Assembly: GCA_033442325.1 (NCBI GenBank)
Contig: JAWQFM010000032.1
Span: 571,956-635,955 of the forward strand
DNA: 64,000 nucleotides
Direction of reading: 5' to 3'
DNA from: Salpingoeca rosetta
Lineage: Eukaryota; Protista; Choanoflagellata
A program made the position numbers and the translations under genes. The notes below the pieces were generated by a model. That model searched no databases. It saw nothing but the letters and a program-made list of their open reading frames with translations, and was not told the origin of the DNA. This document shows, one piece after another, positions 31,377 through 34,896 of this stretch (positions are counted from its first letter, which is position 1; each line of letters starts with the position of its first letter).

Positions 31377-34300
31377 ATGCGGCAGCAGAGGCAACGCCGC
31401 ACAGTTGGGGAAGCACGCTCCACATGCGTGAGCGTCGTCCTCTTGGCTGTGCTGATCGGCGCCTTCTGCCCCCTCATCGCCTTGGGCTCGACAGCTGCTG
31501 CTAGTGGTGGTGGTGGTGCTGCTGCTGGTGGTGCTGCTGCCACCGTGGCTGCTGCGGCCACGACTACTACCACCGCAGATACCGCACTCAGTGATGACGA
31601 TGCCGACATGAGCATGTCCCCGTGGGGCAACTTGGACATGCACTCGTTTGCCTGCTGGTTTCCGACCCCCGACCACGCCGCCATTGTGGCATCCGACAGC
31701 GCGCGCGATGCACTGGTGACTGCCGTCCTGGATGCTGCCGCCGTCCCCGCTTCTTCCGTTTCGCAGCAGGTCATCGCCAGCTACGTTGGCGAGATGGAGG
31801 CCGTTGGGGTCAAGGTTGAGCTCAGCATCACCAACACCTCGACCCTCCAACACCTCTTTGACGTGGCAGAGGACCCGGGCATTGCCATCCACCTGCCCCT
31901 TGCCGCTGACAGCGACACGCTTGTGATTGCGCGCCCCTTGATTGCCAAGTCTGGCGGGGACTGCGGTGCCCGTGGGGACTGCTCATCCACGCCAGCACCG
32001 CCGTCCAAGAGAGTGCATGATGTCAGCACAGCACAGCTCGTCGTCATCGTTGTCGGCTGCGTCGTCGGCGGCGTTGCGTTTGTCGTTGCTGTCATTCTCC
32101 TCGGCGGCACCTTCAACACCGGCAGCCGTGGAAGTGGTGGCGGTGGTGGTGGTTTTGATCGAGGTGGTGGTGATGACGCTGGCGGTGGTCGAGGGTGGGA
32201 GGATGAACGACGCAACAACAGCAGCGGCAACAACAGCAGCAGGGGCGGCAACAACAGGGGCAGTCACATCAAGCACCACAACAGCAACACCACCAATGCC
32301 ACCGCTTACACCACAAGCAGCAGCAGCAGCAGTGCCATGCATGAGACGTCCCTTCCCTTGCCATCCATCGTGCCGCCACCGCCACCACCAGCTGTGCGCC
32401 TGCGCGGGGTGGACGAGATGGTTGTGGGTGGACACCTACATCCCTCCTTCTCCCACGGCTCAGTCGCATACACACCATCGCCGCCACGCCAACACCACCA
32501 ACACCATCAGCGACAACATCAACAACAACAGCGACAACCGCTGCTGCGCGGGGGCGGCGTTGACGCTGTGGAGGTGCTGGCCTCAGATGCCGTGCAGCGT
32601 CGTCTCAACCAGCCCCGCACACACGCCACCGCCCTACCCAGCACCAGCGACACACACCATCCACACTACCACCCCTACCATCCACAATACCAGCAGCAAC
32701 AGCACGACGTGAGCCACGGCCACTCGTCAAACGACAACAGCAGCGGCAGTTCACCCCGGTCTTCGTCACTGCACAGCGACCGGCTCACCACCACCACCAC
32801 ACTAACCACATCAACCTCCATTGGCCACCACGACAGCTTTGTTGCAGCCAACGATGATGATGGTGGTGGTGGTGGTGACGGCAGCATCTCGCTGATGCAT
32901 GACGCCGCTCACCGTGCATTTGAGGATGAACCGCTGCCTTCTGACCTGCATCTGCACCTGCACCCCGAACACCTCCACCCGCACCACCGACCACACACGC
33001 AAATGTACCCGGTGCACGCGGGGGAAACGGTGGAGGACATGCTTGAGCCGGCACACATGAGCACCATCACGATTCCTCTCGATTCTGCAGCCACGACGTC
33101 CACAGACATGTTTGCAGACATGTTCAACGTGCAGTCGCCAAACTTCAGCGACGAGCTGGCCCTGCACGGCAGCGGCGACGCAGCCGCCCTCTCGCCCGTC
33201 ACCGTCAACGACCTTCGACGACAACAACAACAACAACAACAACAACAACAACAACAACAACAACAACAACAACAACAACAACAAGGGCTGCGCGTGTGCA
33301 GTGTGGGTCGTGTACACGGCGCTGCCATGGGTATGCAGCCACACGCGCAACAACAACAACAACAACAGCAGCAGGGGCAACGGAGGCTGCTTGTGCCACC
33401 TCCTTGGTTGGTTGAAGGGATGCAGCAGACCAGCGCCCACAATGATCAGCAGGTGACAACGAGCAGTAGCAGTGGCAACAACGGTCGACCACGCCATGCT
33501 GCCTCATCACAGGCCAGTGGTGCTGCTGGACAGAATATTGCCCCGCATGCACTCGACCGCTCACTCTTCTCCATCCCAGCGCCCCATCACCACAACAAGC
33601 AGCAGCAGCATTCAACCGCACTGCCACCGCTCTCGCTGCCGTGCACAACCAAGAGCGGCAACGCGAACCGCAACGGGAACGCACCATCCAGCCAACACGG
33701 AGCAAGTGCGTTGCAGTGTGTCTGTGCAGTCGTGTGTGTGTGTGTGTGTGTGTGTGTGTGTGTGTGTGTGTGTGTGTGTGTGTGTGTGTGTGTGTGTGTG
33801 TGTGTGTGTGTGTGTGTGTGTGTGCTAGTGTGTGCTAGTGTGTGCTGTGTGTACATTCTCTGTCCCATGTAGATTATTGTTGCTGACGACCATGTGTCCA
33901 CCATTTCCACCCCTCGTGGTGCAGAATCACAGCGGTCACCCGTGCAGGCGGGTACTGCAGACAAGCTTCCAAACAAGGTGCGCACGTCACAACCGCGCTC
34001 TGTGTTTAGGCGCACATGAACACACATACGCTTGCACATGAACACATACACTTGCACATGAGCAGTCGCATTTGCTCGCACTGACACCCCGTTCACTGGC
34101 ACTGTGTCCATGCATTTCAGGGTGCAACATCTGTGAAGAAACCAACAAAGGCGGCGACAAAGAGGGTGAGCAATGTGTGCAAATGTGTGAGTACGTGCAA
34201 GTGCTTGTGTGAGTGTGTGTATCTGTGTGAGCTTGAACGCGCGTGTGCTTCGAAGCAAGAATTGTTTCTCCTTCTCAACAAACTCTCACGCATGTGATTG

Positions 34301-34896
34301 ACGTTGTGGTTGCTTGCAGTCACGACGGCAGGCTGGCCAGGACAAACCCAAGACGCCACGCGTGCGTGATCGCCGCGATTACATGAAGGCATACAGACGC
34401 CAGCGTCGGCAGCAAGTGCGTATGTGTGTGTGTGTGTGTGTGTGTGTGTGTGTGTGTGTGTGTGTGTGTGTGTGTGTGATATCATCAAGTGCGCACAGCC
34501 ATTGGTGGTTGTGGTGGTGGTCATCATAATTTGCAATTTGCACAGGACGACTCACACAACTTATCATCACGCGACACCACTCTCCCCTTTTGCACCATCC
34601 CCCTCCTCCGCAACTGCACACACACACACACACACACACACACACACACACACACACACACACACACACACACACACACACACACACACACACACACACA
34701 CACACACACACCACAGGTGGAGGAGCTGCAGGGCCGGGTTGCGCAACAGGAGCACGAGAAGCGCAAGCTGAAATCGCGCGTGGACGAATTGGAGGATTTG
34801 GTGGACAGGTTCAGACACGCGTTGCCACCAGACATGTTTGCCGCCATTGTACAGCAGGGTAGAGGCGGAGGCGGTGGCGGTGTCGTGCAGTGCTGA
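31377..34896 (+). CDS. Predicted type-I membrane protein (about 900 aa): signal peptide, ~180-aa ectodomain, single TM helix, low-complexity cytoplasmic tail, C-terminal atypical bZIP. Exons 31377-33705, 33925-33977, 34121-34165, 34320-34415, 34717-34896
   Basis: Hydrophobic N-terminus [46 protein letters not shown] (about 32037-32108). All four GT-AG introns are phase-compatible (1,0,0,0), giving 2703 nt. C-terminus [19 protein letters not shown]|[32 protein letters not shown]. Confidence 0.75.

Follow-up and report, generated by a model that had tools for sequence, protein, structure and literature searches.

In Notch, APP and ErbB4, the intracellular domain is freed by shedding and gamma-secretase; S1P and S2P act on type II substrates. 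Membrane-bound transcription factors of the basic leucine zipper (bZIP) and basic helix-loop-helix types have been sorted into four topological classes, comprising the N-terminal NHB1 anchor of Nrf1, the C-terminal anchor of XBP1u, the type II arrangement of ATF6 and OASIS, and the hairpin of SREBP (PMC6213907). In a 2026 survey of membrane-bound transcription factors, the bZIP entries are ATF6 and CREB3L only (PMC13294678). The gene considered here lies within a stretch of 64,000 nucleotides (nt) from the choanoflagellate Salpingoeca rosetta (assembly GCA_033442325.1, contig JAWQFM010000032.1, positions 571,956 to 635,955; hereafter the window), and runs on the + strand from an ATG at 31377 to a stop at 34896, with five spliced exons encoding a protein of 900 amino acids (aa). 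Its predicted order of signal, ectodomain, transmembrane (TM) segment and cytosolic C-terminal basic/zipper module is outside all four classes of PMC6213907. No paper came up in a full-text literature search for a type I TM protein that combines a bZIP domain with regulated intramembrane proteolysis. The product may be a single-pass type I membrane protein whose disordered 655-aa tail, ending in a bZIP-derived cassette, is released as a transcription factor, a reading that is plausible although somewhat short of an even chance.

ATF6, CREB3 (OASIS, Luman) and the plant factors bZIP17, bZIP28 and bZIP60 likewise carry a basic/zipper module on a single-TM tether, with proteolytic release presumed here as well. 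In those proteins, however, the bZIP precedes a type II TM, the C-terminus is luminal, a signal peptide is lacking, and S1P followed by S2P carries out the cleavage. Here, the module occupies the extreme C-terminus after signal, ectodomain and TM, and lacks the bZIP signature. The original prediction for this locus, made from the DNA letters alone, held that membrane-bound bZIPs place the bZIP N-terminal to the TM; this applies to ATF6, CREB3 and the plant factors but not to Nrf1, Nrf3, CncC and SKN-1, where the bZIP is C-terminal (PMC6213907). With a hydrophobic anchor N-terminal to their C-terminal bZIP, Nrf1 (NFE2L1), Nrf3, CncC and SKN-1A offer a precedent for a TM ahead of a bZIP (PMC6213907). 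Unlike the present protein, Nrf1 has a lone uncleaved anchor and its bulk is first luminal, then retrotranslocated and clipped. In the S. rosetta protein, a second TM after the 183-aa outer segment would put the tail straight into the cytosol, and there is neither a CNC domain nor sequence similarity to Nrf1.

The predicted layout resembles that of Notch, APP and ErbB4, with a candidate signal peptide, an ectodomain, one TM in which Gly and beta-branched residues abound, and an effector tail in the cytoplasm. In topology, the description of the protein as Notch-like is therefore apt, but it does not extend to domain content: exon 1 contains no Pfam domain at E<=10 beyond low-complexity noise, EGF, LNR and ANK being absent. 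In addition, the tails of Notch, APP and ErbB4 are co-activators or adaptors, not DNA-binding modules.

Transcript and membrane topology

The TM-encoding exon and the basic/zipper exons form one expressed transcription unit, as the original prediction had proposed. Stranded raw RNA runs (X19, X20), RNA contigs (X3) and a DNA run (X1) were mapped on 30800-35800, where RNA depths are low (1-10x). The transcript is on the + strand, with the first mate on the - strand throughout and an antisense depth of about 0. All four introns, largely (GT)n/(CA)n microsatellite, have canonical GT..AG ends and keep the reading frame throughout. Next to the joint of intron 1 (Table 1), those at about 33977>34121 and 34165>34320 are each covered by 11 raw reads, again with GT..AG. 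An 855-nt X3 contig (record 12), aligning in pieces at 33384-33705, 33925-33975, 34119-34164, 34319-34410 and 34721-35016, carries all four junctions, reaching from the 3' end of exon 1 through the zipper exon into the 3' untranslated region (UTR). The nine letters between its last two pieces correspond to 34411-34415 plus 34717-34720, so intron 4 was also spliced out in that RNA molecule. This contig is the only RNA support for intron 4 (34416-34716) because the flanks are (GT)n/(CA)n. Mostly-intronic bins have a depth of about 1x, vs about 8x in exons. Further X3 contigs (31381-31654, 31627-32223 and 32213-33207) are unspliced, and breaks occur only at the (CAA)n runs of 33208-33383.

Position 31377 is the earliest in-frame ATG past the upstream stop. 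The leader ahead of it (423 nt, + strand) is free of ATG in every frame, as a 5' UTR would be, and has same-strand RNA coverage from at least 30967. This coverage continues without interruption from the 5' UTR to about 35141. Exons 3 and 4 are both phase 0-0, and loss of either from the transcript would leave the frame intact and yield isoforms with the zipper only; among the joints listed at the present RNA depth, none skips exon 3 or 4. At 32136-32636, a stretch of Gly/Asn/Ser/Pro/His/Gln-run codons, RNA and DNA depth rise 5- to 30-fold with many loose ends, which is cross-mapping from other low-complexity loci. The depth spike and the odd joints seen there were rejected as splicing, given their non-canonical ends, supporting sides of about 20 nt and low-complexity cross-mapping.

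The N-terminal hydrophobic segment, the single TM, the basic exons and the final exon with heptad leucines, all foreseen in the original prediction, are present in the sequence and in Kyte-Doolittle profiles. Five Arg residues within aa 2-14 precede a hydrophobic segment at aa 17-37 (19-aa mean, peak 2.77). AlphaFold2 places a helix at aa 7-38, and a candidate signal-peptidase site between Gly37 and Ser38 (Ala35-Leu-Gly37) is plausible by a heuristic (-3,-1) reading. The TM helix is modelled at aa 218-246 with a predicted local distance difference test (pLDDT) score of 78-84 and harbors a small-x3-small motif, G227-x3-G231-G232. Apart from the N-terminal segment and the TM, no 19-aa window exceeds 1.6. 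Cleavage of the signal would give a type I protein, and an uncleaved signal would give a hairpin with the N-terminus in, the loop out and the C-terminus in; aa 245-900 are predicted to be cytosolic either way. The positive N-terminus, the hydrophobic signal and the second span are in line with the cytoplasmic C-terminal module that had been proposed, the reverse of ATF6, CREB3 and bZIP28.

The outer segment, about 183 aa long where about 180 had been estimated, comprises an Ala/Gly/Thr-rich stalk (aa 38-70) and has one NTS sequon (aa 153-155). A Cys pair had been described just before the TM; Cys196 and Cys202 (within aa 194-203, 31956-31985) are indeed near it, but the pair region ends 17 aa ahead and is not directly adjacent. 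Neither a Pfam domain nor a homologue was found for the ectodomain (word-indexed search, proteins of 427-1358 aa), and an ESM Atlas feature search with it returned a top score of 0.83 and no family. Two single-sequence AlphaFold2 runs give a pLDDT of 39-46; the possible small core that they suggest at aa 102-172, ordered beta-alpha-beta-beta-alpha-beta, is of low confidence. With this model, Foldseek against PDB gave only generic ferredoxin-like/PII-like matches (E >= 0.07), none of them significant. Pfam gave no SEA match, and no weight is given to a ferredoxin-like topology or to the SEA-like fold that the original prediction had named as an example. Between the two ectodomain Cys lies an Arg-Gly-Asp at 31971-31979; the sequence C-G-A-R-G-D-C resembles the disulphide-loop RGD of integrin ligands, and may well be due to chance.

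The cytoplasmic part totals 655 aa. The Q/H/S/P-rich tail of about 600 aa that had been described is present, but its Q/H/S/P/T-rich stretch amounts to about 530 aa within exon 1. It includes a run of 21 Gln (aa 616-636); the original prediction had likened the poly-Q tail to an activation domain. Poly-Gln and poly-His are common across the open reading frames (ORFs) of the window.

Allelic differences found in reads comprise four synonymous changes and I133L in the ectodomain, and a mixture of synonymous and non-synonymous changes in the tail. This pattern, from a small sample, fits a constrained folded outer domain and a relaxed disordered tail. Over 30800-35800, X1 DNA contigs and the window disagree at about 0.7% of positions, and X3 RNA contigs are almost identical to the window. 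Several sites have intermediate allele fractions in the 2026 RNA reads (e.g., 34789 T>A in 9/26 reads, 34979 and 34982 in 8/21). Polymorphism in this region is more than expected for a single clonal laboratory strain.

The basic/zipper module and a second cassette

The C-terminal module consists of two basic clusters (aa 800-812 and 818-828), an RRDYMKAYR signature at aa 827-835 (34371-34397, exon 4) and a zipper with L845, Q852, L859, L866 and F873 at d positions and V849, K856, V863 and V870 at a positions. The bZIP signature is numbered Asn13, Ala16, Ala17, Ser/Cys20 and Arg21, followed by Leu31/38/45/52/59 (Jindrich and Degnan, PMC4736632). Arg21 is retained as Arg835, the canonical nine residues separate it from Leu845 (Leu31), and a repeat of at least four heptads directly follows the basic helix. 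As in canonical bZIPs (PF00170), the basic helix is continuous with a zipper of about four heptads, with Leu, Leu, Leu and Phe at d and Val at a. Exon 5 alone scores 18.1 bits against Pfam bZIP_1 (profile positions 28-60). When exons 4 and 5 are joined, the match to bZIP_1 covers profile positions 18-60 of 64 at 25.2 bits (E 1.8e-5) and ranks first among Pfam families, ahead of several other coiled-coil families that score too (Rab11-FIP3, Spc29, DivIC, TRIM_CC). The top PDB sequence matches are the zippers of GCN4, CREB, FosB and ATF4, which are weak (E 0.03-1) and none significant. By these comparisons, the module keeps the register, Arg21 and the zipper, with four of the five base-contacting positions changed. 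It is best described as bZIP-like and probably bZIP-derived, and is not classed as a member of the bZIP family. The original prediction, which had called it a bZIP, does not stand in this respect, the score being below the Pfam threshold and Asn13, Ala16, Ala17 and Ser20 missing.

The gene 5 kb downstream ends in a second cassette with RRREYMRRYR, an identical Arg-to-Leu spacing and Leu/Leu/Gln/Met/Leu at its heptads. Both genes have a phase-0 intron three codons ahead of the first Leu, and another phase-0 intron before the basic exon. The strict motif RR[DE]YM[KR]xYR occurs twice in the window translated in six frames, against 1e-6 occurrences expected; in 200 shuffles, the core motif never occurred twice. 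Outside the motif the cassettes have diverged, with 11 of 58 anchored positions identical. Because motif, spacing and intron position agree, the two are regarded as kin. The cassette looks lineage-specific. With the motif kept while the zippers diverged, the basic helix is the conserved part and is itself probably under constraint, a pattern that points to a specific binding surface more than to simple coiled-coil pairing. The phase-0 borders would fit exon shuffling onto varied N-terminal modules. The neighbouring gene (39159-41217, + strand) has a 443-aa N-terminal ORF with only a weak TrAA12 match and no F-box or LRR Pfam match at E<=0.001. It has no hydrophobic span, and would thus be a soluble carrier of the cassette.

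Proposed release and alternative readings

In the proposed mechanism, the protein would form a dimer in a secretory membrane or the plasma membrane, with the zipper and perhaps also the GxxxG-type TM keeping the two chains together. A signal at the small ectodomain would lead to juxtamembrane shedding; gamma-secretase or a rhomboid, as proteases able to use type I substrates, would then cut within the membrane. The released tail would enter the nucleus through its two basic clusters, where the Arg/Tyr/Met-substituted basic helix would bind nucleic acid and the Gln/His-rich tail would act as an activation region. Proteolytic release and nuclear function are steps that we infer. Holozoa, a choanoflagellate among them, are reported to have presenilin, nicastrin and APH1 (PMC2770060). 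Together with the type I orientation and the Gly/Val-rich TM, these Holozoan gamma-secretase subunits make a circumstantial fit to regulated intramembrane proteolysis. A broader proposal, rather doubtful at present, is that one-component receptor-transcription factors form a family specific to the lineage of S. rosetta, in which a shuffled phase-0 cassette with a re-invented RRxYMxxYR DNA-contact surface is joined to varied sensors. One of these sensors would be a type I surface receptor, giving through intramembrane proteolysis a direct surface-to-nucleus route that arose independently of Notch.

If the mechanism holds, the protein would depend, like Notch, on intramembrane proteolysis of the type I branch, and would bring a DNA-binding domain of its own. 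Choanoflagellates are the sister group of animals, and S. rosetta is transfectable and genome-editable. The gene would then add a variant to the known membrane-tethered transcription factors, in an experimentally tractable organism, and as a choanoflagellate example would bear on surface-to-nucleus signalling before animals. The RRxYMxxYR cassette would escape bZIP surveys that apply the Pfam threshold, and transcription-factor counts for this lineage may consequently be too low.

Several results weigh against a released transcription factor of type I topology. The score of exons 4 and 5 against bZIP_1 (25.2 bits) is below the gathering cut-off of 27.6 bits. Asn13 is replaced by Arg827, Ala16 by Tyr830, Ala17 by Met831 and Ser/Cys20 by Tyr834, and Asn13 and Arg21 are nearly invariant among 896 eukaryotic bZIPs (PMC4736632). 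A full phmmer search with the C-terminal 89 aa against 1.84 billion representative proteins gave no match, not even to itself, and the absence of a homologue among them leaves the module without comparative support. By BLASTP the two cassettes show no significant similarity, and the second lacks any Pfam bZIP match. The flank ahead of the TM (K211, R212) is as basic as the one behind it, so that type I topology hangs on a working N-terminal signal. In the X1, X3, X19 and X20 data, no single read or contig covers both the stretch that encodes the TM (32037-32108) and the zipper exons, and X19 depth over the 5' third is about one fifth of that over the 3' part, which both a 3' bias and an internal start would fit.

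The main alternative, only a little less probable than the released factor, is that the protein is a receptor, an adhesion protein or a scaffold that never enters the nucleus. Its coiled coil would dimerise or cluster the tail or recruit a cytoplasmic partner, its basic clusters would bind acidic lipids or proteins, and the bZIP resemblance would be that of any basic stretch beside a coiled coil. Exon 5 alone provides 18.1 of the 25.2 bits, mostly coiled coil, and the other coiled-coil families that score, the loss of four of the five DNA-contact signature residues, the paralogous cassette without a bZIP match and poly-Gln/poly-His runs too frequent in the window to mark an activation domain all agree with this. 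However, bZIP_1 ranks top among Pfam families, and the exact Arg21-Leu31 register with a basic helix directly before the zipper is specific to bZIPs. A nine-residue basic motif kept in two otherwise unrelated proteins despite zipper divergence also suggests a functional basic helix. The shallow 5' end bears on another reading, in which a soluble nuclear isoform arises from an internal promoter or AUG past the TM (Met at aa 321, 348, 507 or later), the full-length form being minor, or inactive and sequestered, and no proteolysis being needed. X19 mean depth is about 1 over 31301-32135 vs about 5-6 over 32804-33471 and 34641-35141, and the TM region and the zipper exons are never joined in a single molecule. 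The ratio is nevertheless sample-dependent, as in X20 depth differs between the 5' third and the 3' part by just 1.3- to 1.8-fold, the 5' third again being the lower. At such depths, a poly(A)-type 3' bias would look alike, and RNA contigs are continuous over 31381-33207. There is no read-start cluster for an internal transcription start site (TSS), and the only start listed in exon 1, at 33196 (five molecules), abuts a skipped (CAA)n repeat. A soluble isoform of this kind is considered unlikely.

Finally, the model could be an artefact that fuses a membrane-protein gene, ending in or near intron 1, with a separate small basic/zipper gene. With intron 1 retained, the exon 1 ORF stops at 33872, and the public proteome appears to be without this model. 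The S. rosetta proteome is present in the searched collections, where the neighbour ORF at 60374-62725 matches PTSG_10010. Exact-sequence look-ups among public proteins gave none for the read-through ORF or for 15 other ORFs of the window. From the empty searches with the C-terminal 89 aa and with the ectodomain, we infer that public protein sets lack the 900-aa model or, at a minimum, its last exons. Against an artefact, raw reads and a contig splice 33705 to 33925 in frame, and the same contig runs through the downstream exons into the 3' UTR. Exons 2-4 offer no ATG for a separate ORF, and read depth falls from about 8x in exons to about 1x in mostly-intronic bins. The two-gene reading is essentially excluded by the RNA joints and is highly improbable.

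Features and further observations in the window

Table 1. Features of the basic/zipper gene and of the paralogous cassette, in window coordinates
Feature	Position	Strand	Details
Probable 5' UTR	30954-31376	+	includes (CAA)n microsatellite 31296-31372
Exon 1	31377-33705	+	776 codons up to GT donor
Candidate signal peptide or signal anchor	31377-31487	+	aa 1-37; core aa 17-31, Pro32, A35-x-G37 then S38
Luminal/extracellular part	31488-32036	+	aa 38-220, about 183 aa
Transmembrane helix	32037-32108	+	aa 221-244; Val/Gly-rich; Kyte-Doolittle peak 3.09
Cytoplasmic low-complexity tail	32109-33705	+	aa 245-776; Gly, Asn/Ser, His/Gln and Thr runs
Intron 1	33706-33924	+	(GT)n core; GT..AG joint 33705>33925, 13 raw RNA reads and one RNA contig
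Exon 2	33925-33977	+	aa 777-794; RNA joints on either side
Exon 3	34121-34165	+	aa 795-809; first basic cluster; phase 0-0; flanking joints 11 reads each and contig
Exon 4	34320-34415	+	aa 810-841; basic region; phase 0-0
Exon 5	34717-34896	+	aa 842-900; zipper, then Gly-rich end and stop codon
3' UTR	34897-35141	+	RNA depth ends near 35141
Paralogous basic+zipper cassette	exons 40687-40779, 41077-41217	+	3' end of gene 5 kb downstream; gene model from sequence

Between the two cassette genes, 35722-38058 on the - strand encodes six TPR_12 units (E 1e-84) followed at the C-terminus by a weak match to a PH domain (E 1.4e-4), with no TIR or HET domain in Pfam at E<=0.001. An in-frame (GT)n stretch in it looks like an unspliced intron. 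At 4069-7797 (+ strand), an intronless ORF of 1243 aa has an N-terminal NYN ribonuclease domain (E 3.5e-6), and its exact sequence was not found in the protein collection. The ORF at 60374-62725 (- strand) is uninterrupted over 783 aa and contains a peptidase M43 domain. The matching PTSG_10010 (442 aa, on GL832986.1 of GCA_000188695.1) is 100% identical over 36% of the ORF, and this public model may be truncated or over-spliced.

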